From sequence record LC667451.1: 64,000 bases of DNA; one strand, given 5' to 3'. The translations under genes and the position numbers were made by a program. This document shows, one piece after another, positions 13,233 through 51,920 of the stretch. The notes under the pieces were generated by a model. That model made no database searches and had not been told where the DNA came from. It saw only the letters and a program-made list of their open reading frames with translations. Each line of letters opens with the position of its first letter. Within the stretch, counting starts at the first letter, position 1.

Positions 13233-14714
13233 ATGTCGACGCCACTTGTCATTCGCTACCCGCTCGATCCGACGGGTACGAGCACCAACAACTTGGTGAC
13301 GGGGGAAATCCAGAACCTGACGGCTAACCGAAATGTCCGCGCGATTGCGCCGATGTACGGTGCGTTCTATACGGACAGCCTGATCGTAACGGACACCGCC
13401 ACCAATCAGCCACTCACGCCGGGCACCCAGTACTACGCTGCCGAGATGTACGAGTTGCCCACGGCCCGTTACGGTAAGCAAATCTGTGCGGTCATTCTGA
13501 TTACGGACCCGACCGTCAGCAATCAGGTCTCGCTGCAGTATCAGGCCCTGGGTGGCCCGTACAGCACGAGCGCACAAGCGATCATCCAGCAGATCAGCAA
13601 CCTGCAACTGGACACGCGTCCGGTAGCGTGGGGCGACATCCTGGATCGGCCGAGCGAATTCCCACCTGCTTTCCACTTGCACGACATCGGCGACGTGTAT
13701 GGCTTCGAGTATCTCGTTCATGCGATCGATCGCGTGCGGGACGCCATCGAAGTGGGCGATACGGCACAGTACGACCAGATCTACGCCTACATCGACCACG
13801 TCCAGCAAACGCTGCAAGCCGAGATCGATTCAGGCAACGCAGGTCTCGCTGCTCACTTGGCGGATTTCACGAATCCGCACCGTGTCACCGCTGCTCAGCT
13901 GAGCGTGTACACGAAGGCGCAGTCCGATGCGATCACCACGCCGATCAACACCACGTTGACCAACCACGTGGCTAACAAGAGCAATCCTCACCAAGTGACG
14001 GTGGCTCAGTTGAACACGTATGATGGTCCGACGATCGATTCGAAGATCGCGACTGCTGTCGCCGCGGTCCGAATTCCGTTTACGCCGGTTCAGCAGGGCG
14101 GCGGTGCCAACCAAGGCACCAACAAAATCTATCTGGGTTGGGACGGCGCCCGCTTGCGTCTGCAGGTGGATTCGAGCGACCTCGGCGGGATGGTCACGTA
14201 CAACGAAATGCTCAGTAACGTGAACAACCTGCAGAACCAGATCAATGCGCGTGTGGTGATCGGTAACCCGATTGCTTACACCAACATTGGTCAGTCGGTG
14301 TCCTTCGGCGACGTCACGGCGACGGGCACGCTTTATTCGTATCACGACGTCTGGGCCTTCTGGTCCGATGAACGTCTAAAGACGAACATCCAGCAGATCG
14401 AAAATCCGCTCGAGAAGATCCGCCAGATCATGGGTGTCATCTATACCCACAACGAACTGGCTGCTCAGCTGACGGGTTGCGATACCAGTGTCGAGCACAT
14501 GGGTTTGCTGGCGCAGCAGATCTTCGCGATTGCGCCGCAGCTGGTGGGTCCGGCTCCGTTTGACGTCGATCCGATCACGGGTGGTTCGATTTCGGGCGAG
14601 CACTACATCACGATCAAGTACGACAAGCTCGTGGCGTTGCTCGTGGAAGGCATCAAGGCCCTGGATAAGCAAACGCAGGATCACGAACAGCGTCTGCTCC
14701 AGCTGGAGGGCTAA
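13233..14714 (+). CDS. Tail fibre with C-terminal peptidase S74 intramolecular chaperone
   Basis: YPLDPTG N-terminus, NPH.VT repeats, C-terminal WSDERLKTNI...GLLAQQ...KYDKLVALLVEGIKAL coiled coil. Confidence 0.9.
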   Translation: MSTPLVIRYPLDPTGTSTNNLVTGEIQNLTANRNVRAIAPMYGAFYTDSLIVTDTATNQPLTPGTQYYAAEMYELPTARYGKQICAVILITDPTVSNQVSLQYQALGGPYSTSAQAIIQQISNLQLDTRPVAWGDILDRPSEFPPAFHLHDIGDVYGFEYLVHAIDRVRDAIEVGDTAQYDQIYAYIDHVQQTLQAEIDSGNAGLAAHLADFTNPHRVTAAQLSVYTKAQSDAITTPINTTLTNHVANKSNPHQVTVAQLNTYDGPTIDSKIATAVAAVRIPFTPVQQGGGANQGTNKIYLGWDGARLRLQVDSSDLGGMVTYNEMLSNVNNLQNQINARVVIGNPIAYTNIGQSVSFGDVTATGTLYSYHDVWAFWSDERLKTNIQQIENPLEKIRQIMGVIYTHNELAAQLTGCDTSVEHMGLLAQQIFAIAPQLVGPAPFDVDPITGGSISGEHYITIKYDKLVALLVEGIKALDKQTQDHEQRLLQLEG

Positions 14715-30261: not shown

Positions 30262-31407
30262 CTAACCCTCGGCTTCGACTTGATGGCCCGAATGCGTCGG
30301 GATCGTGTCGGGCAAGGTGTTCGTCAAATAATACTCTTCCCCATCCAGCAGAAACTGCGCAATCGCTTCGACCCAACGGCCGGGCTGATCTGGTGCGATG
30401 TTTTCCCATGCCCCACGCACGTACCAGCGCTTGACGGTTTCGTTTTGCGCATCGCGCACGTCCGCCGTCCAGGTCGTACCGTAGACGTGAAAGCGGATGT
30501 TGCATTCGCCCGGTGGCAGTTCGAACCCTTCTTCGATCGTTACGTACCATTCCGGCTCTGATTCACGGTCCGGTTGTAGATACAGCTTGGTACTGCCGAC
30601 CTGGTTCACCGAAGGTTCCGTGACTTCAGCCGCGTAACCCACCGACGGGACGGACAGCAAGTAACTGCGCACTAGCAGGGCCACACCACGGCCGATCGGA
30701 TTCGGATCGCCCAGTTCGTACTGATACGTCTTGGCTTCGTCCGTCTGCAGCCAGTTCGCATCGACGTAGAACCCGACGGCTTCCGTTTCACCCAACCAAC
30801 GTTCCAGAATGGTCAGTTCCGGGTCTGCCGCGGGGTCGAGCGCCCTGCCCTGACTGTCCATGATCGAATCCACCCGCAGTTGGGAATCGAACACGCTGAC
30901 ACGACCATCGGCGAGATTGATACTGCCCGAAATGCCCAGTTCAAAACGCACGTACAGATCCTTGCGGACGATGTACTCCAACCCTGCCACGCCCGCGCGT
31001 TCTTCCGGTGTTGTCCAGGTGACGAGTTCCACCATCCCAACCACTAGAGGAATTGACTTCTTGATGATCGTGACGAGGTGGGGTTTGTTGGCGCTGCCGG
31101 GACGGAAGTACGATTCCTCCACGTTCAGGCCGATGTTGGTGTTGACTACCTTCCCCAGTCCCTTGAAGACCAGTGAGATGGTTTCCAGACGTGCGCGTTC
31201 CGGATCGATCGTCCACTTCGAGTCGATCACGTTTTCTTCCAACAGCAGATCGGTCTTGGCCATTTCCAGGAATGGAATGCCTTTACCAAACACCAGCGGA
31301 GCCGACAGAACCGAGCGACCCGCCGTCACCGTTTCGTTCTCCACTGCACCCGGTACTTTGGTGAAGTACTGGGCATTCTCCAAGCTGTATTGCGGTACGA
31401 TTTTCAT
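30262..31407 (-). CDS. Protein whose N-terminal ~218 aa are homologous to the major capsid protein insertion region
   Basis: KIVPQYSLENAQYF aligns with MCP KIIPVYRPEAAANF; TDLLLEENVIDSKWTIDP with TDALLETGMLDSTDAIDP; GFYVDAN with GYDLDAR. Confidence 0.8.
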   Translation of the reverse strand: MKIVPQYSLENAQYFTKVPGAVENETVTAGRSVLSAPLVFGKGIPFLEMAKTDLLLEENVIDSKWTIDPERARLETISLVFKGLGKVVNTNIGLNVEESYFRPGSANKPHLVTIIKKSIPLVVGMVELVTWTTPEERAGVAGLEYIVRKDLYVRFELGISGSINLADGRVSVFDSQLRVDSIMDSQGRALDPAADPELTILERWLGETEAVGFYVDANWLQTDEAKTYQYELGDPNPIGRGVALLVRSYLLSVPSVGYAAEVTEPSVNQVGSTKLYLQPDRESEPEWYVTIEEGFELPPGECNIRFHVYGTTWTADVRDAQNETVKRWYVRGAWENIAPDQPGRWVEAIAQFLLDGEEYYLTNTLPDTIPTHSGHQVEAEG

Positions 31408-31949: not shown

Positions 31950-34013
31950 TTACTTCACCTTACGGATCAGAAATACATCCTGTCCAATCAACCCTTGCGT
32001 GACTTCCAGCAGATGGTCGTCAGCAGTGCGGATCAGATGACGATGGAACAACTCGCCTTCCGTCGCTTCGAAGATGCTACGCGCCAGTTCGTACAACTCC
32101 GGCAGATCGCTCGTGATCATCGAGGCAATCTTGTCCGCCGGATCGAGTTCCAGTTCGAGCTCGACTGCCGCCACATTCAGATACGTGAGCGTGAAGTTGG
32201 CGACGAGATACGTAATCTTCGGCCCCTTGTCCTTCGCGTATTCACGATCCATCAGCAGATTGTCGGTGAGCAGCACCTCTTCTTCTTCCGTGACGAACTC
32301 GGCAAACGCCGCCCGAATATTCTTCACCTGGTTGCCCAGGAAAGCATTCGAGAACGCATCGCCGTAGAACTTCTCGATCGCTCCAGCCACTTCCTCGGCG
32401 TCCTCGACGAACGACGTGATGCGGATGTCCGGAATCGACAGGTTCTGGCTCAACACGCGATTCACCACATCGGTCATGCGCTGGTTGATGGCCTTGTAGA
32501 GCGGCACCGACATCGCGCCTTCCACCGAGAGCATCATCTCGCGCAGTTCCGAGTACGACTTGGCTTCCGCGAACGACTGCAGTGCGCCGCGCTCGTCCGT
32601 CGCAGCGACGAACGGTTCGGCCACTTGCGCCCGGATGCGGAACACATCCGGCACTTGCGAGTCCTTCACCGTTGCCATGCACTTCAGCGTACCCTGCAGC
32701 CATGCCAGGGTTTCCGACGTTTCCAGCACCCATGCATCCTCGATCACCTGCACCAGCGGACGCTTCGGCGGCTCTTCCCCAGCTTCGCCATCGCCCACTT
32801 GCGTCGTCAGTTCCTTCACGCCAGCCTTCACGCGTTTAAGCGATTCGGCGGACTTGGTGGTGTCGACGTTCTTCGGAATACTACCGAAGGTGGTGGGGAG
32901 GCGATGCTTTTCACGGTCCATGGGGGATTCCGTCCTTTCTTTCACAAGCTGGATGACAGCGCCGTCGGGCTGCTGTTGCAGATACATCAGTTGCGTGCGC
33001 GGGTTGTAGGCCAGCGAATACGGCTGGGACAACGACGGCCGCCACTTCAGTTTGGTGGAATCGACATGCTCCGGCTCGTTTTGCACCGGTTTCGTTTCCA
33101 CCTGCTGCAGTGGGGTTGCTGGCACGGTCATCTTGTCGACCTTCTCCGACGGGGCGTTCTTCGGTACCCATGACGAATTCGGGTCCGGCTTGATAGCTGA
33201 CGGCGCATCACCACGAGTCGCGAAACGGTCCGTGTTGAAACGATCCGAACTGCTACCTTCGCTCGAGCCCGCGCCACCACCTGCGCTGAACAGACCCGTG
33301 TTCCCGGTATTCATCCCCGTGAACTGACGCGGTGCTTGACGATTGCCACCGCCGCCCCACGCGCCGCCTTGGTTGCCCATCCCCCAACGACCGCTTTGCT
33401 GCTGACCACCAGCATTCCAACCACCGCCCTGGTTACCACCCCAGCGATTGCCTTGCTGTGCCCAGCCGCCGCCTTGATTCCCACCGCCGAAACCGCCTTG
33501 CATCATCTGCGCATAGACGTTGGACGCCTTGAACTGCGGAATCTCGTTCTGCAATTCCTGCCATATCCGACCAAGATTCTCGACCGTTTGCTGGGCCTGA
33601 ACCGGCGTATCGCTTTGCAGTTGCGGATACTGCAGGATTTGCACCGCGACGAACATTTCCACCATCTTCGGCACGAGCGCTTGTGCTGCTTGCTCCGGAT
33701 TCTGGAACTTGCGATCTGCCAGCGCGAGACAGACCCAATCCGTGACACCCATCACGAGTCCGGCGAAGATCTCGTTCTGGAAGCCATTGCGCGACACCAG
33801 GTTGTAGACGAACATCCGCGGCGGATGACGCGGCGCATTGTCCTGGATATCCATCGCAATTGCGGCAGAGATAACAGGGATCAGATCCCCCATGAACCCT
33901 GGCGCATTGAACTGCGGCACGGTCGGAGGATTGTTGAGCGAGATGCCCTGCAATGGCTGCCTTTCCGCGTTGTACGGGTCTGCAGGCAGCTGACCACCTT
34001 GTAAATTCACCAT
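31950..34013 (-). CDS. Conserved phiKZ-like protein downstream of the nvRNAP subunit, with Gly/Gln/Trp low-complexity linker
   Basis: 687 aa, AAGGA RBS; syntenic position after the RNAP subunit; no catalytic motif recognised. Confidence 0.7.
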   Translation of the reverse strand: MVNLQGGQLPADPYNAERQPLQGISLNNPPTVPQFNAPGFMGDLIPVISAAIAMDIQDNAPRHPPRMFVYNLVSRNGFQNEIFAGLVMGVTDWVCLALADRKFQNPEQAAQALVPKMVEMFVAVQILQYPQLQSDTPVQAQQTVENLGRIWQELQNEIPQFKASNVYAQMMQGGFGGGNQGGGWAQQGNRWGGNQGGGWNAGGQQQSGRWGMGNQGGAWGGGGNRQAPRQFTGMNTGNTGLFSAGGGAGSSEGSSSDRFNTDRFATRGDAPSAIKPDPNSSWVPKNAPSEKVDKMTVPATPLQQVETKPVQNEPEHVDSTKLKWRPSLSQPYSLAYNPRTQLMYLQQQPDGAVIQLVKERTESPMDREKHRLPTTFGSIPKNVDTTKSAESLKRVKAGVKELTTQVGDGEAGEEPPKRPLVQVIEDAWVLETSETLAWLQGTLKCMATVKDSQVPDVFRIRAQVAEPFVAATDERGALQSFAEAKSYSELREMMLSVEGAMSVPLYKAINQRMTDVVNRVLSQNLSIPDIRITSFVEDAEEVAGAIEKFYGDAFSNAFLGNQVKNIRAAFAEFVTEEEEVLLTDNLLMDREYAKDKGPKITYLVANFTLTYLNVAAVELELELDPADKIASMITSDLPELYELARSIFEATEGELFHRHLIRTADDHLLEVTQGLIGQDVFLIRKVK

Positions 34014-37430: not shown

Positions 37431-39626
37431 TCAGACCGAGTGCATGTTGACCGGAACCTTCGCCGTCACCACGTTCTCGATGCCAGCGACATCGATCGAG
37501 CCCATGATCGGCAGGTTCACCACGTGCAGGAACGACGGCTGCACCGTGATTTCCTTGCTGTTCGCACCGTTGCGATGCAGCGGCAGGATCAGCGTGAGTT
37601 CCGGCTTCCACGCCATGTTGCCGAAGTGCATCGGGTTCGGCACGCCTTCCTTGCCTTCACCGAACTCGCCGAACGAGAAGCGGATCTTGCCACGCATGTT
37701 GATGTTCAGCGTCGAGACGATCTTGACGTTGAAGTCATTGCCCAGCGTGCGGAAGTCGCCCGTCACTTGCAGGTAACGTGCGATGACCGGATCGGTACCG
37801 ATGATCACGGTCGGCGTTGCAGCGACGCCACCAGCCAGCGCGTCAGCAGCGGCCTTGAAGCCCGAGTCGCGGTACATGCGGTAGACCATGTCGCGCAGGA
37901 TGTTCACCAGCGAGGCCTGGATGTCCGCAGCACGTTCGTGCGACTTGATCGAGTCGATCACCGCCGGAGCGTTGTAGTCCTGGTGCTCGTAGAACGGCGT
38001 CACGAGGAAGCGCGCCACGCCCAGGATTTCCGGATCGCCTTGATACAGACCGCCGTTCGACGTCACGAGTTCCTTCAGTGCGCCTTCGGCTTCGAGCAGC
38101 TTCGCAACTGCCGCGTTCGACGTACGGATGTGCGTCGCGGTGATCAGCGCAGCCAGGTCCGATGCGTCGTTCTGGTCACCCAGCGTCAGCGGACGCGGGA
38201 TCGTGATCGGCGACAGGAGCGGCACGCCGTAAACCATGTTGTAGAACGTCAGGTCGAGCAGCTGACCGCGTTCACGACGGTTCGTGTTCGTGCGACGTGC
38301 GTCGAGGTCGTAGCCGACGACAGAAGCGCCAGCCAGAGCCGTCGCGATCGTTGCGCCAGCGCCTGCGTCCGTCGGGACCAGGTTGCCGTCTTCGTCACGG
38401 ATTTCGTAGATCGACACCGCACCAGCCGACAATTGCGTGTCAGCGAGTTCGAGGTTGACCGTACCGAACACTTGCAGCGACAGCTTGACTTCGTAGTTGC
38501 CCGACACGATGCTGTCGAGAACCGTCGATGCCGTACCGTCAGCCTTCGTCGTGTTCTTGTTGATCACCAGCGCGTTGCTGATGAAGTTCAGCGACATCAG
38601 GCGGTAGTTGTTCTGCACCGAGTACGTGAAGGTACCCGATTGCATGTTCGCCACCGACTTGAACTTGATCACTTCGGCGCCGTTGCCCGAACCGACCTGG
38701 ATGTACAGCGCGCCCAGCTTGATAGCCGGGTCGATCGCGTCGGTCGAATCCAGCATGCCGGTTTCGAGCAGCGCGTCCGTTTGCGAGATGCCGAGCAGCG
38801 AGAACTGCTTGTTGATCGCCAGCGGGCCCGTCGCGACGGAGATGCCTTCGTGGTCGATCGTTTGCGTCGGCACCAGGCTCGGCGACACGAAGTTCGCAGC
38901 AGCTTCCGGACGATAGACCGGGATGATCTTCGACAGGTCGTTGCGCAGGATCGTCGGGTCGATCAGGGCCTGGATGATGTTCTTCTTGCCGAAGTTCTTG
39001 CTGACCGCGCCGTCGATGGTGCGGCGAACTTCGTCGTACACTTGCACGAGGCGGATCGAGACCGTGTAGCCGTACTGGTCCGGCGTCACGACGACGGTCG
39101 GGAAGAACGCTTCACCGAATTCGTCCTGGCGTGCAGCCTGGAGGTTGTAGGCGACCGAGTACACCGTCGCAGCCTTCGTTTCGCGCTCGTCGTAGGCTTC
39201 GAGAGCCTTCGATTGACGCTTGTCCATCGCACCGTTGCCGACTGCCGGGATGAAGGTGTAGCCTTCCATCGACATCTTGCGGCCGACCGGCGCCGACAGG
39301 AAGCCCTTCATGTCGCCCGCGACGATCGCAGCGACGAGACCAGCTTGCTTCTGCGCAGCCGTGTGCTTGCCAGCGACGAGACCGTCGTTCTGGTTCAGTT
39401 CCGACGCGTAGTTCGAGCTGATGCCTTCGAGGGCAGCCTTGAGGCCCTTGATCGAGGTGTCGAGTTCTTGCGTGGTCGTGGGATCGAGCGACTCCATCGA
39501 CACGACGGAAGTTGCCAGACGCTTTTCGACGGCGGGACCACGGTTGAAGTGGCTTTGAACCTTGGCGACGAGCGAGTTGATCGTACCGTCCTGACCACCG
39601 TTGCCGATTTGATACAGTTTGGACAT
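37431..39626 (-). CDS. Major capsid protein (phiKZ gp120-like)
   Basis: 731 aa with extreme codon bias; propeptide with SME/ALE sites, then ALEAYDE...YNLQAARQDEFGEAFFPTVVV; VIIGTDPVIARYL; flanked by DnaB and RNAP genes. Confidence 0.92.
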   Translation of the reverse strand: MSKLYQIGNGGQDGTINSLVAKVQSHFNRGPAVEKRLATSVVSMESLDPTTTQELDTSIKGLKAALEGISSNYASELNQNDGLVAGKHTAAQKQAGLVAAIVAGDMKGFLSAPVGRKMSMEGYTFIPAVGNGAMDKRQSKALEAYDERETKAATVYSVAYNLQAARQDEFGEAFFPTVVVTPDQYGYTVSIRLVQVYDEVRRTIDGAVSKNFGKKNIIQALIDPTILRNDLSKIIPVYRPEAAANFVSPSLVPTQTIDHEGISVATGPLAINKQFSLLGISQTDALLETGMLDSTDAIDPAIKLGALYIQVGSGNGAEVIKFKSVANMQSGTFTYSVQNNYRLMSLNFISNALVINKNTTKADGTASTVLDSIVSGNYEVKLSLQVFGTVNLELADTQLSAGAVSIYEIRDEDGNLVPTDAGAGATIATALAGASVVGYDLDARRTNTNRRERGQLLDLTFYNMVYGVPLLSPITIPRPLTLGDQNDASDLAALITATHIRTSNAAVAKLLEAEGALKELVTSNGGLYQGDPEILGVARFLVTPFYEHQDYNAPAVIDSIKSHERAADIQASLVNILRDMVYRMYRDSGFKAAADALAGGVAATPTVIIGTDPVIARYLQVTGDFRTLGNDFNVKIVSTLNINMRGKIRFSFGEFGEGKEGVPNPMHFGNMAWKPELTLILPLHRNGANSKEITVQPSFLHVVNLPIMGSIDVAGIENVVTAKVPVNMHSV

Positions 39627-42157: not shown

Positions 42158-44206
42158 ATGTTTTCAGGCCTGAAGCGTCTGATCGGCAAGATCGATGTCA
42201 CGCAAGACGCTAAGCTCATTCACGTCGAAGGTTTGCCCGCCGATGTGGTCGCTCGCGACATCGTCAAGATCTGGGCGACCAGCAAAATCACGAACTTCAT
42301 GTTCAGCCAGATGAACAAGTCGAGCGTGGCGTTTAATCCGTTCTTTGCACCGGACATCGCCTACACGCTCAAGACGATCCTGGCACAACGCAGTCGCAAC
42401 TATAACAATCGGGCGTTGCAAAAGGTCATCGACCTACTGTACCAGAATACCTGGCTCAAGGATACGATCAGCGAGGAACATCACGACATCCTCGACTTCG
42501 GTGCACTCAGCGAACTGAATCTGCAGCTGTTGCCGCACCAGCAGACGTTCCTGAACATCTACAACGAGATGGTTCCCAAGATGCGCCTTAAGGGCTACGT
42601 CTTGGCAGCATCGCCGGGTTCGGGCAAGACGATCAACTCAATCGCACTGGGTCTCACGCTCAATGCGGATGTCCAGATTTACATCGTGCCGAAGAACTCG
42701 ATCGACGAAGTCTGGAGCAAGACGCTGGGCACCATCTTCAACAAGCCGCAGGATCACTCGTTCTGGACCTCCGCTTCGGGTAAGCCACTCGAGTGGGGAC
42801 ATCGCCACTATGTGTTCCACTACGAACAACTGGCACGGGCTGTGGAGTTCTTCAAGGCCAATGCCAGCCGCATGCGTAAGCCTTACCTCGTCGTAGATGA
42901 GTCCCACAACCTGAATGACCTCGGCAGCCTGCGTACGGGGCTGTGGATCGATCTGTGCCGGGTTATGAACTGCCAGCACGTCCTGCCGATGTCGGGCACA
43001 CCGCTGAAAGCCATCGGTAACGAAGCCATTCCGATTCTGACGGTGCTGTGCAACGATTTCAATGACGATGCCCGTATGCGTTTTCAGGAGATCTTCGGTA
43101 AGAACTCCAGTCGTGCCAATGACATCTTGCGCAACCGGCTCGGCCTGATGATGTACAAGGTCGACGCGGTGAAAGACATGGAGCCCGATGAGCCGCGTCT
43201 GGACATCAAGATGCCCAACGGTGAAGCGTACACCCTGGAAGCCGTGAAAGATGTCATGCGTAAGTTCATCACCGAGCGCATGGCTTTCTACAAGGCCAAC
43301 TACAAGGAGTTCGAGAAGACCTACTTCTACGCCCTGAGCATCTTTCAGAAGACGCTGCACGGTGGTCAGGATGTGATCGCCTTCAAGAAGTATCAAGGCT
43401 ACATTTCGACCATTCGTCAAGGCTACGATCCCAAGACCATGAAGGACATGGTGGCATGGTGTAATCACTACGAGAAGTCCAGAATCGCGCCGACGCTTCC
43501 ACGGGAGTTGAAAGTGGCGTTTCTGGATGCACGGTCCGTGGTGAAGTACGTGGACCTGAAGGTGCAGGGTGAGGCCCTGGGTCGTGTGCTGGGTAAGCTG
43601 CGTGCGCAGTGTCACGTGGATATGGTGCCATACATCGGCTTGCCCAAGCTGATCGATGGCTCACTCTCCAAGACGGTGATTTTCACGTCTTACGTGCAAG
43701 TAGTCAAACGCACCGATGAGTACCTGCAAGCAGAAGGCTATCAACCGCTGCTGGTTTATGGCGACACCAACAAGGACCTGAAGTCGATCATTGGTCGCTT
43801 TGCCGAGGATGAGGACCTGAACCCACTCATCGCGACGTTCGACTCCCTGTCGACGGCAGTGCCGCTCATCATGGCTTCGACCTCCGTGTTCATGAACTCA
43901 CCCTTCCGGGATCATGAATACAAGCAGGCCCGTGCTCGTACGGCGCGTCTGGGTCAGAAGTACCCCTGCACGATCTGGAACGTGTTTCTGGATACGGATG
44001 GCAAGCCCAACATCAGCACCCGCTCGAACGACATCATGAACTGGTCGCGCGAGATGGTCGCCTCGATGATGGGCACCAAGACAGACGCGCTAGACATCTC
44101 GCTGGAAGCGTTCCAGGACGAGATCAAGGACCCCGAAGATCAAGCACCCGTCCGAGTTGACGGGTTTATCGCACAACCCAACTGGATGCAGTGGTCATCC
44201 CTTTAA
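42158..44206 (+). CDS. SF2 (SNF2/DEAD-like) helicase
   Basis: Motif I ASPGSGKT, motif II VVDESH, motif III SGTP, motif VI QARARTARLGQ. Confidence 0.9.
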   Translation: MFSGLKRLIGKIDVTQDAKLIHVEGLPADVVARDIVKIWATSKITNFMFSQMNKSSVAFNPFFAPDIAYTLKTILAQRSRNYNNRALQKVIDLLYQNTWLKDTISEEHHDILDFGALSELNLQLLPHQQTFLNIYNEMVPKMRLKGYVLAASPGSGKTINSIALGLTLNADVQIYIVPKNSIDEVWSKTLGTIFNKPQDHSFWTSASGKPLEWGHRHYVFHYEQLARAVEFFKANASRMRKPYLVVDESHNLNDLGSLRTGLWIDLCRVMNCQHVLPMSGTPLKAIGNEAIPILTVLCNDFNDDARMRFQEIFGKNSSRANDILRNRLGLMMYKVDAVKDMEPDEPRLDIKMPNGEAYTLEAVKDVMRKFITERMAFYKANYKEFEKTYFYALSIFQKTLHGGQDVIAFKKYQGYISTIRQGYDPKTMKDMVAWCNHYEKSRIAPTLPRELKVAFLDARSVVKYVDLKVQGEALGRVLGKLRAQCHVDMVPYIGLPKLIDGSLSKTVIFTSYVQVVKRTDEYLQAEGYQPLLVYGDTNKDLKSIIGRFAEDEDLNPLIATFDSLSTAVPLIMASTSVFMNSPFRDHEYKQARARTARLGQKYPCTIWNVFLDTDGKPNISTRSNDIMNWSREMVASMMGTKTDALDISLEAFQDEIKDPEDQAPVRVDGFIAQPNWMQWSSL

Positions 44207-44221
44207 TAACTGGAGTCTGTC

Positions 44222-46870
44222 TTGAAGAAGAAACTCGGACGATTGAGCCTGGAGTCGTTTGACCAGGCCCCGACTGGCAACGTCCAGCCCATGGCACAAC
44301 CGGAGACGCCTCCGCAGCCGCTCGTGCCCACGGCAGGCTACAGCGAGACCCCGTTCAGCGGGCAAGAGAACTACGCAGCCGAGGGATCGGAAGAAGCCGA
44401 AGCAACGGACCTGTGGAAGCGGATTAAACACGCTTTCGATGTCACGTCGACACACGACGAGCAAGAGATCCTCGAACTCAACGGTCCGGGATCACAGTCT
44501 GGTATTCGCGCACTCGAAACCTACTTCCATGCCAGCGTGCCGGAGCTGCTCGTTGAGCTGCTGAAGATCCATAACGGTCAGCGCGCCTGGTGGGAAGGTC
44601 AAGCGTCGGATGGTGCCGAATCCTTCATGCCGCACGTGGCGGTGTTGTTCTCGGCCGAGAACATGCTGAAGGTCTCCAAGGAGATGCTGGAGAACAAGGA
44701 CGAGTACGATGAATGGTACGGTCCGATCCAGAAGAACGATGACCGCATCAAGAATGTGCAGTGGTCCAAGGAATGGTTGGTGATCGCCGCCAATGAGGAC
44801 ACCAAGGGCGTGCACTACATCATCGATTTCGATCCGGCACCGAAGGGTAAACGCGGCCAGATCATCAAGGTCGACTTCGATGGCAACGAGCGCGTTCATC
44901 TGGGCGACAGCTTCGAATCGTGGTTCCGTGGCTTCGTGAATCGCTTGTCCCATCACAATCACGCGATGGAAAGCCTCATCAAGCCTGCGTATCCGCTGCG
45001 TAAGGCGCTCGAAGCCGAGGCGATGGTCGTGGACGTCGACGACCTGGACCAACTCGCTGTAGGGGCTAATAGCCTGTCCTCGTACCTGACGGAATCTGGC
45101 GTCGGTATGGCCATGGAGTCGGCCAAGAGCCCGAGTGACATCGCCAAAAGCAAGATGCACCTGCGCTTCAAGAAGCTCAAGGATGGTTTCGTCGATACGT
45201 TCCGCTCAGCGGCGGGCATGGCTTCGAAGTACGAACGCCAGCTCGACGAGCTGGAAGAAGAGCTGCTCAAGGGTCACGTGCATGGCCAGATCAAGGTCAA
45301 CATGTCGAGTCTGTGGCAGCACTTCTCCGACGAGAAGGGTCCGATCACGCACAACCTGCTCACCAAAGTGCGCGAAGACGTCGCTTACTCGACCTACATC
45401 CTGACGAGCTTCTCGGAGCAAGCCTACCAGCAACTCGAAGGCCTGTCGCGGGCTCTGCATACAGGTCAGGGCACCGACGACGAGCAGGCCAAGCGGACGG
45501 CACTGGATGTCGAGAAGCTCAAGGGTCCGGCTGAATACATGGATCAGAAGTGGATCTGTGCGGCGGGTGAACAACCGTATCTGTCAGTCACGGGTCTGTC
45601 GGCAGTACAAGGTCGTCATCCGCGCCCGGTGGGGATAGAAGGTGTCTCGCTGGATCGTCTGGCGCTGCTGGCTACGCCGTACCATCTGCGTGAGTACGGT
45701 TCGTTCCTGCACGGTCTGAAGAAGATGTTCGTCAACGACTCGAAGAAGGAAACGCATCTGGCGGCAGAAGACCTTGCCAAGCTGATCGTCATCGGTCGTG
45801 AGTACCTGGTGGCCGCCAAGTTGTATCTGGCGATCTACAACAAGGTCTGGCCGATCTTCCGTCGACTCGACGATAGCCTGGACATGATCTGGGATGACTT
45901 CGGCTTGACGGATTACGAGGTCAACATTGAAGGGGAAGCCGAAGACGGCAGCGACGATGTCAACATCCAGTGGCAGACCTCGGACACAGGCAATGTCAAG
46001 CGTCGTCTGGCGGTGTTCGACCAGCTGATGCAGGTGGTGCGCAACTTCTCGGACGCTGTCTTGCAACCGGGTGTGAACGAACTGGCACGGGCGCTGCGTG
46101 CGGCAAAGTTCCACGGCTATCTGGTCGCCGCTGGTATCAAGGCAGCAGAAGGCCATGGCCAGAACGCAGGTAATGTGGCGCAAGAACTGTTCGGCTTTGG
46201 CAAGAAGGAACAACCCAAGGCTGAATACAAAGCCCCACAACTGAAGGACATCCCGGCACCGGAATGGGACCCGCATCATCCGCCGTCAATCCAGCAGACC
46301 TGGCAAGCGCTCACGACGTTTCTGAAGCAAGAAGCGCCGGACCAGTTGAAGTACATGCGGCCGCTGCAAAACGACGCTGAACTGAAGAAGTTCATCGCGT
46401 TGGTGAAAGAAGAGTCGGGCCGTGAGTTCCCCAAGGAACTGATCGAGCTCTGGAAGCTGACGGACGGCTTCGAATCGTCATGGCAGAAGCCCGGCATGTT
46501 CGATCATGCAGACTTCCTGTCGGTGCACTGGGCCTACGACGCGTATCTCTCCAATCTGTCGATGATGGACGACGACTGGGCAGATTCGAGTTCGGACGTG
46601 GGTCAAGGTATCCAGGGTAAACGCTGGTGGGAGCCCTGGTGGATTCCGTTCACGGGTCACGGCAACGGCGACGCACTGTGCGTCGACATCCATCCGGGCG
46701 CCGGTGGTAAGCCGGGTCAAGTGATCTCCTGGTACCACGACTCGGATGATCGCATGGTGAAAGCTCCGAGTGTCGCGGCTTTCTTCGCGTTGTGCGTGCA
46801 TCGCACGATCTACAGCCACGGCCACAAGAAGGACTGGGACAGCAAGAACCCGCAGCAAGCCCAGAAGTAA
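44222..46870 (+). CDS. Head-protein paralog carrying two SMI1/KNR4 (SUKH) domains
   Basis: TTG start with GGAG RBS; SUKH motifs LNGPGSQSGIRALE..VPE..IHNGQ..WLVIA..IDFDPAPKGKRGQII..SFESW and FPKEL..TDG..WWIPFTGHGNGDALCVD..GQVISWYHD..APSV; central region homologous to 46945-48378. Confidence 0.85.
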   Translation: MKKKLGRLSLESFDQAPTGNVQPMAQPETPPQPLVPTAGYSETPFSGQENYAAEGSEEAEATDLWKRIKHAFDVTSTHDEQEILELNGPGSQSGIRALETYFHASVPELLVELLKIHNGQRAWWEGQASDGAESFMPHVAVLFSAENMLKVSKEMLENKDEYDEWYGPIQKNDDRIKNVQWSKEWLVIAANEDTKGVHYIIDFDPAPKGKRGQIIKVDFDGNERVHLGDSFESWFRGFVNRLSHHNHAMESLIKPAYPLRKALEAEAMVVDVDDLDQLAVGANSLSSYLTESGVGMAMESAKSPSDIAKSKMHLRFKKLKDGFVDTFRSAAGMASKYERQLDELEEELLKGHVHGQIKVNMSSLWQHFSDEKGPITHNLLTKVREDVAYSTYILTSFSEQAYQQLEGLSRALHTGQGTDDEQAKRTALDVEKLKGPAEYMDQKWICAAGEQPYLSVTGLSAVQGRHPRPVGIEGVSLDRLALLATPYHLREYGSFLHGLKKMFVNDSKKETHLAAEDLAKLIVIGREYLVAAKLYLAIYNKVWPIFRRLDDSLDMIWDDFGLTDYEVNIEGEAEDGSDDVNIQWQTSDTGNVKRRLAVFDQLMQVVRNFSDAVLQPGVNELARALRAAKFHGYLVAAGIKAAEGHGQNAGNVAQELFGFGKKEQPKAEYKAPQLKDIPAPEWDPHHPPSIQQTWQALTTFLKQEAPDQLKYMRPLQNDAELKKFIALVKEESGREFPKELIELWKLTDGFESSWQKPGMFDHADFLSVHWAYDAYLSNLSMMDDDWADSSSDVGQGIQGKRWWEPWWIPFTGHGNGDALCVDIHPGAGGKPGQVISWYHDSDDRMVKAPSVAAFFALCVHRTIYSHGHKKDWDSKNPQQAQK

Positions 46871-46944: not shown

Positions 46945-48378
46945 ATGAAAAAGAGTCTGAACCGTATTGCGCTGGAAGCCGAGCGCGTTGAAGAAGTCCG
47001 CGCCGAAGGCGAGCGTACGGAAGAGCTGCGCCGTGTCGAAATGGCGGAGCCGGTCACCAACGAACCCGAACTGATCGACGTCGAGCGCGCGGCTGACGAC
47101 GCTGACGGCGAATACGAGATCGAGCAATCCGACGCGGTCGCTATCGAACAACTGTGCGCGTGGCGCGACCTGCTGGCTCACCAGATCCAGTCGAAGACCG
47201 TGTCGCTGGAATCGATCGCGATGGTCCAGATGGGCGTCCAGCAGATCTACGCGCGTCAAGGCGTGCGCATGCGCACGATCTCGCAAGAAAGCAACATGTC
47301 GGTCGAAGCCTACGGCAAGTACGTGATGGAAGGCATCTTCGGCGCGATCGGCAACTCGATCGTCCTGCCGTTCAAGCGCTGGAAGGACCGTCTCGGCGAT
47401 CTGTTCCGCACGCTCCCGTCGCAAGCCGAGAAGTATCGCAGCAAGCTGACCACGGCGCGCGAAGAACTGCACCAGAAGCCGTTCTCGGGCGCAGCCGAGA
47501 TCAACATGCACGAACTGTGGGGCTTCTTCACGACCGGCGAGGGTCAGGCTGTCAAGACGCTCGCGACGCTGCAGAAGGACCTGGCGATGGACAAGTACGT
47601 CCTCGTCGACTATCCGCAACAACTGGGCAAGCTGGTGCAACAAGCCGCGGGCATCATCGGCAACGGCGACTGGTCGACCGACGAAGGCGCGAAGCGTGCT
47701 GCACTCGAACTCGAAAAGCTGCCGCACCCGGCGGATCTGTTCAACAAGCAGTTCCTCTCGGAAGGCAAGAAGCCGTACCTCGGCGTGACCGGTCTGGATC
47801 TGCAAGTCGGCGCGAAGCGCAAGGTGCTGTCGATCGGCGGCGTGGCACTGCCCAAGCTGGCTGAACTCGCCTCGGCCAAGCGTGTCACGGAAACGGGTTC
47901 GCTGGGTCACGACGTCGCCAACCTGGCAGGCAAGATCGGCGGCAAGATTGTCGGTAATGCGGTCAACACCGCCTCGATCGTGCTGTCGAAGAACGTGAAG
48001 ATGTCGCAGCAAGACCTCGACAAGCTCATCACGTTCGGCGAAGAGTACGTCAACAACGTCGACGCTTACCTGAAGGGCGCTTCGCAACTGAACGGCGCGT
48101 TCGAAGCCCTGGACGCAGCGATCGAGAAGCACTCGCATGGCAAGTACGAAGCAGGCGCTGGCGCGGTGCTGCAACAAGCCGCAGGCTACGCTGACCAACT
48201 CGTGCAAGCCTGGGGTAACCCGGCCGTGCGTGAAGTGCGTCGTGCTTTGCGCGGTGCGCGTTTCGTGGCGTACATGGCTCGTCGTGGTATCTTCCACGGC
48301 TCGAACAGCGGCCAGAGCGACCAGAAGACGCATGAAGGCACCGTCGGTGAACAAGGCGGCGAAGCAGCTGCAGCGTAA
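46945..48378 (+). CDS. Inner-head / ejection-type protein with protease-cleaved propeptide
   Basis: N-terminal IALE, acidic propeptide, further SLE/SQE/SVE sites; strong highly-expressed codon bias; TATG just upstream. Confidence 0.7.
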   Translation: MKKSLNRIALEAERVEEVRAEGERTEELRRVEMAEPVTNEPELIDVERAADDADGEYEIEQSDAVAIEQLCAWRDLLAHQIQSKTVSLESIAMVQMGVQQIYARQGVRMRTISQESNMSVEAYGKYVMEGIFGAIGNSIVLPFKRWKDRLGDLFRTLPSQAEKYRSKLTTAREELHQKPFSGAAEINMHELWGFFTTGEGQAVKTLATLQKDLAMDKYVLVDYPQQLGKLVQQAAGIIGNGDWSTDEGAKRAALELEKLPHPADLFNKQFLSEGKKPYLGVTGLDLQVGAKRKVLSIGGVALPKLAELASAKRVTETGSLGHDVANLAGKIGGKIVGNAVNTASIVLSKNVKMSQQDLDKLITFGEEYVNNVDAYLKGASQLNGAFEALDAAIEKHSHGKYEAGAGAVLQQAAGYADQLVQAWGNPAVREVRRALRGARFVAYMARRGIFHGSNSGQSDQKTHEGTVGEQGGEAAAA

Positions 48379-49230: not shown

Positions 49231-50517
49231 ATGAAAGCATTCAATTGGCGAAGCGCCCTCGCTCTCGAAGAATTCCCGCCGCCCGGTGGCGGTACGTGGA
49301 GCCAGACGCAAGCTGAGATTGACGCAGCGAAGAAGCGTCCGACTGAAGACCAGGATCTCGAGGACACGGCTAAGCCGACTGAGCAGGCCGGACAGATCGA
49401 CGGTGATACCACGACGCTCTCGGGTCAAGCCAAACGTGGCCAGAATCCGGTGCCGGACAAGGAAGATACCCGCGGGGGTGGTGAGCCGAAGATCAACAGC
49501 GCGCCGGTGGATCTGGCGGATGTGGTGCTGACGGAGCAGGATCAGCGCAGCTACCAGCCGCTCGTCTCGGACAAGGCCAGCAAGGACGCGATCAACGAGC
49601 AGAACCTGGCGCAAGAAGGCCTGGTGGAGCGGATCAAGGATGCGTTCTCGGGTGCCGAACACGGCATCATGGAAGTGCGTGTGAAGGCTGAGGAAAACCT
49701 GGCCACAATCGAATCCATGAAGACCAAGCTTCAGGTCCGCAAGGGTGAAGTCCACGAGAAGGCAGAACCGATTCGTCTGTCAGCCTTCGCTACCTGGATT
49801 GCACTCGATGGCAAGATCATCGACGATGAAGCCACGCTGCTCAAGGAACTGGGTCGTCTGAAAGAGTTCGCGGACTGGATCACGACCGACTACAGCAATG
49901 CGCTCTTCGCAGCCTATGAACATATGGCGACGCAAGTGCTCAAGCTCGGCGAGTCGGATCTGGACAAGGCTACGGCCAACTTCGCTACGGTGCTCGAGCA
50001 GTTCAAGCCGAAGAACACCGAGAAGTTCCTGACCCTCAAGGAATCGACCACCGAGAAGGGCCAGACCTACACGGACATGAAGTCGCCGATGTTCCTGGGT
50101 TCGTGGCACCTGAACGCGCTGGAGCAACCCGCGAGCAACACCGCCAAGGGCCACACGGTCAGCTTCTCGTGGCACAAGGACGCGGACAAGGTCAAGAAGG
50201 GTGATTTCAAGCCGCTGCCCAAGGCAGCCATGGGCAAGGTGCTGGAAGTCCTGAATGCGATCTCGCAAGTGATGGCCAGCCACAAGCCGGACCACAAGAA
50301 GTACATCCGCTTCCTGGATGCGCTGGACGAGTTCGCGTATCGCTATCGCTACTTCAACGAACTCTCGCGTGAAGACAAGCAGAAGGTCACGAGCATCTAT
50401 TCGGGCGTGAAGATCGTCGCTGGTGCCGACCGTCTGTGGTTTGCTGATCGCGCCGTCAATCATACGGTCAAGGCCGTGCTGCTGTACATCGAGAAGTCGA
50501 TGCGCCGCATCAAGTAA
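49231..50517 (+). CDS. Inner-head / ejection-type protein
   Basis: N-terminal ALALEE, acidic propeptide ending at AQE-GLVERIK, a pattern typical of phiKZ-family processed head proteins. Confidence 0.7.
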   Translation: MKAFNWRSALALEEFPPPGGGTWSQTQAEIDAAKKRPTEDQDLEDTAKPTEQAGQIDGDTTTLSGQAKRGQNPVPDKEDTRGGGEPKINSAPVDLADVVLTEQDQRSYQPLVSDKASKDAINEQNLAQEGLVERIKDAFSGAEHGIMEVRVKAEENLATIESMKTKLQVRKGEVHEKAEPIRLSAFATWIALDGKIIDDEATLLKELGRLKEFADWITTDYSNALFAAYEHMATQVLKLGESDLDKATANFATVLEQFKPKNTEKFLTLKESTTEKGQTYTDMKSPMFLGSWHLNALEQPASNTAKGHTVSFSWHKDADKVKKGDFKPLPKAAMGKVLEVLNAISQVMASHKPDHKKYIRFLDALDEFAYRYRYFNELSREDKQKVTSIYSGVKIVAGADRLWFADRAVNHTVKAVLLYIEKSMRRIK

Positions 50518-50528
50518 AGGAGTGTCTC

Positions 50529-51920
50529 GTGGAAGAAGAAGTCATTGAAGCCACGGTAGAAACCCCGGCTCAGCCGGAGGTGCCGACCGAAACGGTGGTG
50601 CTCACCGAGGACGTGGAATGCGCGCGCATGAACCGTCAGTTGGAAAAGCTGGAAGACCTGCGCGGTCGCTTGACCGAGAACAAGCAGCTGACCAGTGAAG
50701 TCGCACTGGAACACCAAGCCCTGACGGGGACTGACTCGTTGGTGGATGCGTACTTCAGCACGGCTGCCAAGCAAAAGAAGTACCAGATCGCCTCTGAAAG
50801 CCTGCTACAGACCACGGTCACGCTCCTGAAGAAGGCGAAGGACCTGCTCTGGAACATGATCGTCAAAGTCTTCAACTGGTTCCAGAAGCTCTTCATGGAC
50901 AAGAAGCCGCTGACGGAAGCGGCAGTCGAAGCCGAGCACGCGAAGTTCAAGGAGTACGTCGGTCCGGTCGAACGTGCTGAGCGGGTACCGAGTTCACGCA
51001 CCGCCATCATCGCTGCAGTGCGGGAATCGGGTCTGGACGACAAGTACGTCGGCCAACTCACACCCGAGGAAATGGACATCTACAACGAAGGTCGTTTCCA
51101 TCAAGCGATGCAGAAGGTGATCCCGACGCTCAAGGGCTTCGACGTGTACGACGTCGTGACGGCGCTGGAAGCTTGGCACAAGAAGGCATTGAAGGACGCT
51201 GAGATCTTCGATCAGGAAAACGGTCAGTTGGCCGAAGAAGTGGTCGAGCGTAAGCTGGAAGTCTGGAAGAAGGACACCCAGCGTGCCCTGGACTCAGCAA
51301 CCCAGATGTCCAAGTCGATCATGGAAGTGCGTCTGCAAGCCTACCAGATCGCCGTGGAAGAGCGCCGTAAGCTCAAGGTTGATCCCCACTTCCATCTGGG
51401 TACGGACCTCTCAGGCATCATGCATCGCGGCCTGCGCATCTTCGATCAGTCCGGCTACAAGCAAGTCGGCGACGGTATGCGTGACGTACACGCTGGGCTC
51501 ACCAAGACCGTCAAGCAGTTGCAAACGCTGCGTCAGAACGCAGAAGTCGAACTCCAGCAGATCCAGATGGGTGGTGGCAACAGCGTGATGCCGGGTGTGC
51601 CGGGCGCACGTAAGCCCGCGATGGAGTTTGTGGAAGCGAGCTTCATGAAGGAAGTGAACCGCATCATCTCGACGCTGCATCAGTGCGTCCAGTCGGTGCA
51701 GTTGCTGAACAACTACTTCTCCTTCGTGGTGTCGAGCACGCGTACGATCCTCAAATACGTGCAGGAGACGGCCGTAGAGGCGATGAAGTTCGGTGGCGAT
51801 GTCAAGAGCTTGAATGACGTTGCGCGCCGCGCTGAGGCCGGTGCAATCCAACCTACGGAGACGGACCTCCAGAACAATCTGGGATCTGCCTACGATACCA
51901 AGGCTGGTGACGGTAGCTAA
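50529..51920 (+). CDS. Inner-head / ejection-type protein
   Basis: GTG start with AAGGAG RBS; VALE and ASE sites followed by the amphipathic LKKAKDLLWNMIVKVFNWFQKLF helix. Confidence 0.65.
   Translation: MEEEVIEATVETPAQPEVPTETVVLTEDVECARMNRQLEKLEDLRGRLTENKQLTSEVALEHQALTGTDSLVDAYFSTAAKQKKYQIASESLLQTTVTLLKKAKDLLWNMIVKVFNWFQKLFMDKKPLTEAAVEAEHAKFKEYVGPVERAERVPSSRTAIIAAVRESGLDDKYVGQLTPEEMDIYNEGRFHQAMQKVIPTLKGFDVYDVVTALEAWHKKALKDAEIFDQENGQLAEEVVERKLEVWKKDTQRALDSATQMSKSIMEVRLQAYQIAVEERRKLKVDPHFHLGTDLSGIMHRGLRIFDQSGYKQVGDGMRDVHAGLTKTVKQLQTLRQNAEVELQQIQMGGGNSVMPGVPGARKPAMEFVEASFMKEVNRIISTLHQCVQSVQLLNNYFSFVVSSTRTILKYVQETAVEAMKFGGDVKSLNDVARRAEAGAIQPTETDLQNNLGSAYDTKAGDGS

Follow-up and report, generated by a model that had tools for sequence, protein, structure and literature searches.

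Two SUKH domains fused to a divergent relative of jumbo-phage internal head proteins in Burkholderia phage FLC9: a candidate injected counter-defence precursor

We analysed gp96 (BDD79615.1), a protein of Burkholderia phage FLC9 in which two SUKH domains are joined to a helical core that appears to be related to the internal head proteins of jumbo phages. Its gene lies in a stretch of 64,000 nucleotides, hereafter the window, which is identical to positions 62001-126000 of record LC667451.1 (321,833 bp; host B. glumae); coordinates are those of the window unless the record or another contig is named. All genes of the FLC9 record, that of gp96 included, are labelled "hypothetical protein", and the literature mentions FLC9 only as a genetically distinct jumbo phage applied against rice seedling rot. 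An earlier note, made from the letters of the DNA alone, had read gp96 as a head-protein paralogue carrying two immunity modules that are cut free, injected and set against host toxins, an interpretation that is partly supported by the evidence presented below. The gene and the parts of its product, with the confidence of the AlphaFold model given as predicted local distance difference test (pLDDT) values, are as follows:

44222-46870, plus strand: gp96, 882 amino acids, TTG start; precursor made up of a leader, a propeptide with SUKH1, a PF12699-type core, a linker and SUKH2
44212-44215, plus strand: GGAG, Shine-Dalgarno-like, six bases before the TTG start; the residues translated from this start are conserved among homologues
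44222-44254, plus strand: N-terminal leader, amino acids 1-11, ending in S-L-E, the predicted first prohead-protease cut site
44255-44383, plus strand: disordered propeptide segment, amino acids 12-54, pLDDT below 50, ending in A-A-E (amino acids 52-54), which is invariant in 11 of 11 homologues
44387-44956, plus strand: SUKH1, amino acids 56-245, pLDDT 70-89, a lineage-specific insertion in the propeptide
44957-45130, plus strand: disordered linker, amino acids 246-303, pLDDT below 50 at amino acids 245-277 and 284-310, with candidate cut sites A-M-E 250, A-L-E 264 and A-M-E 299
45131-46150, plus strand: helical core, amino acids 304-643, a probable divergent member of the PF12699 superfamily and paralogue of gp97
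46151-46228, plus strand: disordered linker, amino acids 644-669, pLDDT below 50 at amino acids 644-666, with an invariant A-Q-E (amino acids 653-655) followed by LFGFGKK
46229-46849, plus strand: SUKH2, amino acids 670-876, pLDDT 80-93, present in every gp96 homologue

Both SUKH domains are real and belong to the SUKH-1 family by profile as well as by their alpha+beta fold. The PF09346 (SMI1_KNR4) model, with a gathering score of 25.4, matches gp96 twice, at amino acids 91-236 (46.4 bits, E = 7.5e-12) and 725-856 (60.8 bits, E = 2.7e-16); the borders listed above were widened from these Pfam spans with the help of the AlphaFold model and of family hidden Markov models (HMMs). The AlphaFold model, built on 11 homologues and with a mean pLDDT of 64, comprises a disordered segment (amino acids 1-55), a SUKH1 folded from amino acid 56 to 243, a core of long helices and a SUKH2 that is folded up to amino acid 875. 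In Foldseek comparisons, the SUKH parts match the core of Knr4/Smi1 (E = 7e-9; template modelling (TM) score 0.65-0.69 on the target), and also FBXO3, Bacteroides BF1740 (3d5p) and B. subtilis YobK (2prv). Profile search and predicted fold thus bear out the two SUKH-like domains that the earlier note had placed at about 44400-44950 and 46280-46810. No other open reading frame (ORF) of FLC9 carries a SUKH domain. The two modules of gp96 share 22% identity (E = 2e-4), and an origin of SUKH1 by internal duplication of SUKH2 was considered and rejected given this low identity; since the distance among SUKH1 variants is as great as that between them and SUKH2, it is no less likely that the module was acquired independently or exchanged.

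Both modules match a more specific profile, PADLOC PDC-M40A, better than the general Pfam model and from end to end of its 169 positions (E = 2.2e-24 for SUKH1 and 1.4e-32 for SUKH2). PDC-M40 is a candidate three-gene defence cassette, FAM_02470>>FAM_01369>>FAM_02062, that was identified by its embedding in BREX, DISARM or type I restriction loci (bioRxiv 10.1101/2024.01.29.577857). Of its three genes, gene A alone has a profile that finds a match here, and no other PADLOC profile matches gp97-gp100. SUKH proteins at large act as immunity proteins against nuclease and deaminase toxins, and those of animal DNA viruses have been proposed to bind host antiviral proteins (PMC3113570). When SUKH2 was compared with 5.8 billion proteins, no scored match was obtained, the relatives outside the phage clade being too distant to share 5-residue words, and the SUKH-domain alignment proved too variable to yield a usable search pattern. 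A genome scan with SUKH2 gave two matches at 23% identity in Caldimonas polysaccharide-synthesis loci, devoid of any SUKH Pfam match, which were treated as chance.

The core of gp96 has a paralogue in the next gene:

46945-48378, plus strand: gp97, a PF12699-type protein without a SUKH domain, with a leader ending in A-L-E at amino acids 9-11

Amino acids 314-655 of gp96 align with amino acids 141-461 of gp97 at 30% identity (BLASTP E = 7e-35), in agreement with the homology to this neighbour that had been noticed from the letters. That gp97 is a head protein was, at that stage, an assumption; gp97 has no direct Pfam or PHROG match to that effect, but several indirect lines, by profile, profile-profile comparison and fold, lead to the same identification. 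A profile of the gp97 family and the gp96 core, run against 1.84 billion representative proteins, retrieved 157 clusters at E ≤ 1e-3, mostly of 400-500 amino acids. Three of the retrieved proteins (P0089, P0095 and P0109; profile E = 1e-38 to 7.5e-23) exceed the PF12699 gathering score, and 47 of the 100 members scanned match PF12699 at E ≤ 1e-3 (best 1.1e-20), with no other Pfam domain at that threshold in any of the 47. An hhalign comparison of the gp97/gp96-core alignment with a canonical PF12699 alignment gave a probability of 99.9% (E = 2.6e-34, 389 columns), to be read with the caveat that the canonical side held six sequences, FLC9 gp332-334 among them, and that three of the six had themselves been retrieved by the gp97/gp96-core profile. 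The predicted model of gp97 (pLDDT 74, predicted TM score 0.69) has 98 matches in BFVD at E ≤ 1e-3 (TM 0.5-0.6), the named ones including "Internal head protein" entries as well as virion structural proteins of 201phi2-1, Psa21, Noxifer and PhiEaH1; the best BFVD matches of the gp96 model are also jumbo-phage virion proteins, aligned to the core and not to the SUKH domains. A broad HMM of the carrier family, that is, the family of the core, weakly matches phiKZ gp94, and phmmer comparison of gp96-gp100 with phiKZ gp79-gp99 and gp119 gave no match. In the PDB, sequence searches with the core family and gp98-gp100 returned coiled-coil noise only, and Foldseek with the gp96 core returned only non-significant helical bundles. 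Among the latter are alpha-helical pore formers of the ClyA, SmhA and Hbl type at E = 3-6, which are recorded solely since phiKZ inner-body proteins associate with an early lipid vesicle and do not constitute evidence.

To judge from these profiles and predicted structures, the gp96 core and gp97 form a divergent branch of the PF12699 superfamily, that of the phiKZ internal head proteins. PF12699 is the family of phiKZ gp93, gp94, gp95, gp162 and gp163 and of SPN3US gp53 and gp54, the latter two being abundant, protease-processed ejection proteins (PMC5694885). Elsewhere in the FLC9 genome there is a canonical set:

Record 264349-269403 (42349-47403 of L007), minus strand: gp332-334, canonical PF12699 cluster beside head-tail joining genes, 59-119 bits

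One member of this cluster, gp334 (762 amino acids), has an N-terminal extension of about 350 amino acids without a family match, i.e., it is another carrier with cargo of no known family.

Comparison of gp96 with its homologues indicates that the two SUKH modules have different histories. Ten homologues are metagenomic (43-73% identity, on contigs of up to 326 kb), and eight more loci were found in IMG/VR; a tblastn search of 50,697 deposited phage genomes with gp96 found FLC9 itself only. The leader, propeptide, core, linker and C-terminal SUKH occur in every gp96 homologue, and SUKH2 is, by this comparison, ancestral to the gp96 family. SUKH1, on the other hand, is present in 6 of the 11 homologues, inserted directly after the invariant A-A-E (amino acids 52-54), and cleanly absent from the other 5; three of the SUKH1-bearing proteins have extra A/S-x-E sites ahead of it. 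Where SUKH1 is missing, the region upstream of E299 measures about 110 amino acids, close to the 125-137-amino-acid propeptides of SPN3US gp53 and gp54, and for this reason SUKH1 is placed inside the propeptide, as an insertion acquired in one sub-clade. Thus, the description of a paralogue flanked by two SUKH domains holds insofar as two such domains flank the core, but the modules are not equivalent. The phages without SUKH1, which are the more distant relatives, have no gp97 gene, so that gp97 is a derived duplicate limited to the FLC9-like sub-clade. In two phages without SUKH1 and gp97, an extra 185-amino-acid ORF with no family match separates the SNF2 helicase gene from the gp96 homologue (L011 6455-7012; L010 6683-7240).

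Fusion of the carrier to SUKH domains extends beyond the gp96 arrangement. A gp97-type relative, P0019, has the same linker letters as the gp96 linker (amino acids 644-669), followed by a C-terminal SUKH domain, and P0104, a remotely related member of the carrier family, ends in a SUKH_5 domain, a fusion independent of that in gp96. In the gp96 homologue P0003 (1058 amino acids; L012 9171-12347), the second SUKH is replaced and a third SUKH-like segment stands at the C-terminus, with Pfam counting two SUKH matches. The same phage has an extra 241-amino-acid ORF between its gp98 and gp99 homologues (L012 14713-15438).

The SUKH modules are also the least conserved parts of the protein. Mean pairwise identity among the 11 homologues is 71% in the leader (amino acids 1-55) and 65% in the core vs 44% in SUKH1 and 46% in SUKH2. 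Compared to its closest relative, P0002, gp96 is 93% identical in the core and 72% in SUKH2 but only 28% in SUKH1; compared to P0003, identity is 78% in the core, 59% in SUKH1 and 24% in SUKH2. At the DNA level, FLC9 and the contig of P0002 are 90% identical in the leader, 34-60% in SUKH1, 82-89% in the core, 63-76% in SUKH2 and 84-92% in the next gene. These alignments indicate an exchange of SUKH modules among close relatives on a carrier that remains about 90% identical, and the combination of a conserved carrier with replaced SUKH modules is what one would expect of a conflict interface rather than an assembly domain.

The processing implied by the earlier note requires a phiKZ-type prohead protease, and FLC9 encodes one:

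Record 32360-33145, outside the window: gp36, S80 prohead protease, PF20034 Peptidase_S80 at 256.8 bits over the full model length

This protein also matches the phiKZ prohead protease gp175 directly (phmmer E = 8.8e-43). Proteases of this type recognise S/A/G-x-E in phiKZ and A-x-E in SPN3US, cutting after the glutamate (PMC5694885, PMC10052503), with a preference in SPN3US for valine at P4 and serine at P1' (PMC10052503). Motifs of the S/A-x-E kind are indeed found at the domain borders of gp96, as had been noticed, and it is their conservation rather than their raw number that sets them apart. Six motifs, with glutamates at amino acids 11, 54, 264, 299, 450 and 655, are kept in 11 of 11 homologues and all lie at pLDDT below 50; five of the six fall in the N-terminal leader or the two inter-domain linkers. 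The A-M-E at amino acids 248-250 is, in addition, present in all six SUKH1-bearing homologues. Sites 11, 250 and 299 have serine at P1' and site 655 has valine at P4, in agreement with the logo of the SPN3US protease. The leader motif is a property of the whole family: 109 of 143 full-length carrier-family members have [SAG]-x-E within the first 20 residues (40.5 expected; maximum of 59 in 500 shuffles), a leader of this type also occurs in gp97, gp99 and gp332-334, and it resembles the site at which phiKZ gp93 is cut, SLE-13 (PMC5694885). The conserved S/A/G-x-E motifs of gp96 are thus regarded here as candidate S80 protease sites. The LFGFGKK that follows A-Q-E (46184-46204, about amino acids 655-661) recurs in most gp96 homologues and in the gp97-type P0019; such a sequence is unusual for a linker and might be recognised by the protease or by some other factor.

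The genes around gp96 place it in a phiKZ-like setting:

37431-39626, minus strand: gp92, phiKZ-type major capsid protein (phrog_3231, E = 1.5e-193; 31% identity to phiKZ gp120, E = 8e-67)
42158-44206, plus strand: gp95, SNF2-type helicase (Pfam ResIII, SNF2, Helicase_C)
49231-50517, plus strand: gp99, with an N-terminal M...A-L-E leader as in gp97 and no family match
50529-51920, plus strand: gp100, with a sub-threshold PF12699 match (E = 0.0071; E = 6.7e-4 for the L011 homologue)

Given that gp92, encoded 4.6 kb upstream of gp96, is a major capsid protein of the phiKZ type, FLC9 can be assigned on sequence grounds to the phiKZ-like lineage, as a distant member. Six kb from the capsid gene, a 381-amino-acid ORF (30262-31407, minus strand) matches positions 226-445 of the phrog_3231 profile (E = 5.5e-14) and may be a truncated or diverged capsid paralogue. 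gp94 is a homologue of the phiKZ helicase gp118. gp95 ends 15 bases before gp96 and matches the phiKZ gp203 locus (37% identity, tblastn E = 2.6e-141), whose product carries the label "structural protein" in AF399011; the gene directly upstream of gp96 is thus that of a presumably virion-associated helicase. On the other side, Pfam, PHROGs, NCBIfam and PADLOC offered no informative family match for the gp96 core, gp97, gp98 or gp99, the sole match of gp98 being the unannotated phrog_5043; gp99 is likely to be another head protein. The C-terminal half of gp99 (49622-50461) forms a second divergence island between FLC9 and the P0002 contig, with 62-69% DNA identity compared to about 80-90% around it, and is a candidate seat of a partner that co-varies with the SUKH modules. 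A scan for sigma-70 promoters and terminators remained at chance level, as expected because the phage uses its own RNA polymerases. Farther away in the window, two adjacent paralogues on the plus strand (11296-13131 and 13233-14714) share the N-terminal virion/tail-protein domain phrog_2163 and differ in their tail-fibre-like C-termini.

We propose that gp96 is the precursor of an internal-head (ejection) protein of a phiKZ-like jumbo phage that acquired SUKH domains as cargo, and that this cargo serves as a pre-made inhibitor of a host toxin or defence effector. From the data above we infer packaging, cleavage, ejection and target in the following sequence. The precursor would be made together with the other head proteins and would enter the prohead by means of its PF12699-type core and N-terminal leader. 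The S80 protease gp36 would then cut after the conserved S/A/G-x-E motifs in the disordered leader and linkers, removing the leader (amino acids 1-11) and propeptide fragments and leaving a core of about 356 amino acids (300-655) and a SUKH2 module of about 227 amino acids (656-882), free or still attached to the core; possibly, a free SUKH1 module of about 196 amino acids (55-250) would be left as well. The core and any retained SUKH would leave the head with the DNA, and SUKH would bind a host protein before phage genes are expressed, the likeliest targets being toxins or nucleases that serve as effectors in defence or toxin-immunity systems. This scenario has a close precedent in phiKZ, where gp93, gp95, gp97 and gp92, which share PF12699, are proteolysed during packaging and injected with the genome, and where C-terminal mNeonGreen, sfCherry2 and FLAG fusions to these proteins are packaged, the fluorescent ones having been seen to enter the cell (bioRxiv 10.1101/2024.03.24.586471). 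The claim of the earlier note that head proteins of this family are ejected into the host thus agrees with the literature, its delivery model is plausible by analogy, and the C-terminal SUKH2 might be the natural counterpart of the engineered fusions. The neutralisation of host defence toxins would follow by extrapolation from SUKH proteins elsewhere. We rank the pre-made inhibitor first because of the phiKZ injection and fusion precedent combined with the immunity and antiviral-binding roles of SUKH proteins. The architecture of gp96 is close to certain, its presence in the virion is likely, its processing is probable and its ejection is mildly favoured, whereas a defence target of the SUKH modules is a tentative assignment; for the chain as a whole, we estimate a probability of roughly 45%.

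The nearest known systems each share part of these features. The PF12699 proteins of phiKZ and SPN3US ("paralog family A", SPN3US gp53 and gp54) resemble gp96 in superfamily, in the short S/A-x-E leader, in propeptide length and in forming paralogue clusters in an S80-encoding genome; unlike them, gp96 and gp97 are so divergent as to be missed by the Pfam model and are encoded apart from the canonical cluster, and gp96 bears folded SUKH domains. IPI* of phage T4 is a small protein that is targeted to the prohead by its N-terminus, trimmed by the protease after glutamate, ejected with the DNA and able to inhibit a host nuclease before phage expression. It is similar to the proposed gp96 in the outline of its working, compared by description and not by sequence or fold, and differs in consisting of one small domain that has no structural carrier joined to it and in depending on a protease of a different MEROPS family. 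Bacterial SUKH-1 immunity proteins, such as YobK, are like the gp96 modules in passing the Pfam threshold and in fold, in the occurrence of several divergent SUKH domains together and in quick diversification, but gp96 has no adjacent toxin gene or polymorphic-toxin locus and is fused into a head-protein precursor. Gene A of PDC-M40 is matched over the full profile by both gp96 modules, but PDC-M40 is a bacterial three-gene cassette, the other genes of which are unmatched in gp97-gp100. Finally, the US22-family SUKH proteins of herpesviruses and other animal DNA viruses, set beside gp96 by description, are viral, often have two SUKH domains in tandem and have been proposed to bind host antiviral proteins (PMC3113570), but they belong to a different SUKH group, occur in viruses of eukaryotes and involve neither a head-protein carrier nor prohead processing.

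Several observations weigh against injection of the SUKH modules as counter-defence cargo. The connection of the gp96 core and gp97 to PF12699 is transitive, there being no direct match of either to the Pfam model at thresholds of E ≤ 0.1 to 1. The raw counts of S/A/G-x-E motifs are not enriched in disordered regions of gp96: of the 26 in the protein, 9 fall in low-confidence segments, which account for 28% of its length. The SPN3US protease makes nearly all of its cuts to take off N-terminal propeptides, most of which are cleared from the head, and the only C-terminal cut is in the protease itself (PMC10052503); hence, no direct precedent exists for a C-terminal module being released at A-Q-E 655, and the fate of SUKH1 is uncertain, as it may be lost with the propeptide region in which it is embedded. 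Not every inner-body protein is ejected, either: phiKZ gp89 and gp162 stay in the head (bioRxiv 10.1101/2024.03.24.586471). Searches of the neighbouring genes against Pfam, PHROGs, NCBIfam and PADLOC found no toxin, nuclease or PADLOC partner gene, and thus not the genetic linkage to a toxin gene expected of a toxin-immunity SUKH. No close bacterial relative of the SUKH modules that would point to a target was found, so that, with SUKH2 lacking such a relative, the target cannot be inferred from gene neighbourhoods.

Four alternative explanations, taken in descending order of probability, have to be set against this scenario. The SUKH modules could be general adaptors for host takeover or for the early infection compartment, binding a host protein unrelated to defence, such as a membrane or translocon component, as in the case of Syd, or a metabolic enzyme. 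The SUKH scaffold does bind partners of diverse structure, and eukaryotes use it as an adaptor (FBXO3, Knr4); the injected PF12699 proteins of phiKZ associate, at the early infection vesicle, with membrane and metabolic proteins of the host (bioRxiv 10.1101/2024.03.24.586471). A conserved housekeeping target, however, would favour a conserved module, whereas the SUKH domains are the fastest-diverging and most exchanged parts of gp96; moreover, their best profile is PDC-M40A, a SUKH family embedded in defence loci, and there is no match to the Syd family. We therefore regard an adaptor role as unlikely.

Alternatively, the modules might protect the phage from itself, as immunity proteins against its own toxic, virion-packaged effector, for example a nuclease, which they would keep silent both in the cell that makes it and inside the head. 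Canonically, SUKH proteins confer immunity to a cognate toxin, usually a genetically linked one (PMC3113570), the heads of phiKZ-like phages hold many uncharacterised proteins (PMC10052503, PMC5694885), and the neighbouring gp98-gp100 have no functional family in our scans. Nevertheless, searches of gp97-gp100 against Pfam, PHROGs, NCBIfam, PADLOC and PDB sequences revealed neither a toxin nor a nuclease domain. Furthermore, SUKH1 is replaced compared to the closest relative while the flanking genes are 75-95% identical in DNA; a co-evolving partner should show a matching divergence island, and identity is otherwise low only in the C-terminal half of gp99. Self-immunity is accordingly quite improbable.

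A role in head assembly alone, with SUKH1 and possibly SUKH2 acting as chaperone or scaffold-binding domains that are destroyed or expelled when the head matures, without ever reaching the host, has a low probability as well. It would suit the location of SUKH1 between cut sites, in the region that is equivalent to the propeptide of about 110 amino acids in relatives without it, given that the homologous SPN3US propeptides are cut at several sites and mostly cleared (PMC10052503). SUKH1 itself contains ten further S/A/G-x-E motifs, but these are conserved in at most 4 of 6 homologues and lie in confidently folded segments. An assembly domain, moreover, would be expected to be conserved along with its carrier; yet, five relatives manage without SUKH1, and it has been exchanged between near-identical carriers. 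It is very unlikely that gp96 is no virion protein at all but a cytoplasmic phage protein that shares a helical domain with head proteins: its gene does directly follow two helicase genes, apart from the canonical PF12699 cluster, and has no direct Pfam or PHROG head-protein match, but the conserved S-L-E leader is typical of protease-processed family members, fold and profile links lead to virion proteins verified by proteomics, and both the label of the upstream helicase's phiKZ homologue and the nearby capsid gene point to a virion context.

Injected internal proteins, processing by the prohead protease, SUKH immunity and the use of SUKH domains by viruses are all already known. A SUKH/KNR4 domain in a jumbo-phage head protein is not described in the searchable literature, which includes a comparative review of 224 jumbo phages. 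Extended to the whole clade of phiKZ-like phages of about 310-326 kb, the proposal would be that internal head proteins serve as a delivery chassis for exchangeable SUKH "antidote" cassettes held between protease sites, which are swapped like the immunity genes of polymorphic toxins and injected pre-made against toxin effectors, for instance of the PDC-M40 type, before the phage nucleus forms and genes are expressed. In this general form, we consider it doubtful.

Once their nucleus is in place, nucleus-forming jumbo phages are protected from defences that target DNA, which leaves their survival during the first minutes to be explained. If gp96 acts as a pre-made inhibitor, this would suggest that ready-made antidotes are delivered at the first moment of infection. 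Almost none of the inner-body proteins that are injected has an assigned activity, and the SUKH fusion offers a concrete hypothesis for some of the injected cargo together with a domain whose partner can be searched for. The fusion further suggests that the PF12699 carrier is modular in nature too, and not just in engineered fluorescent fusions, and it connects phage heads with the SUKH immunity repertoire and with the candidate defence cassette PDC-M40. Even if the SUKH modules turned out to be a feature of assembly only, gp96 would still be a clean case in which a domain was inserted into a propeptide with protease sites at its borders.

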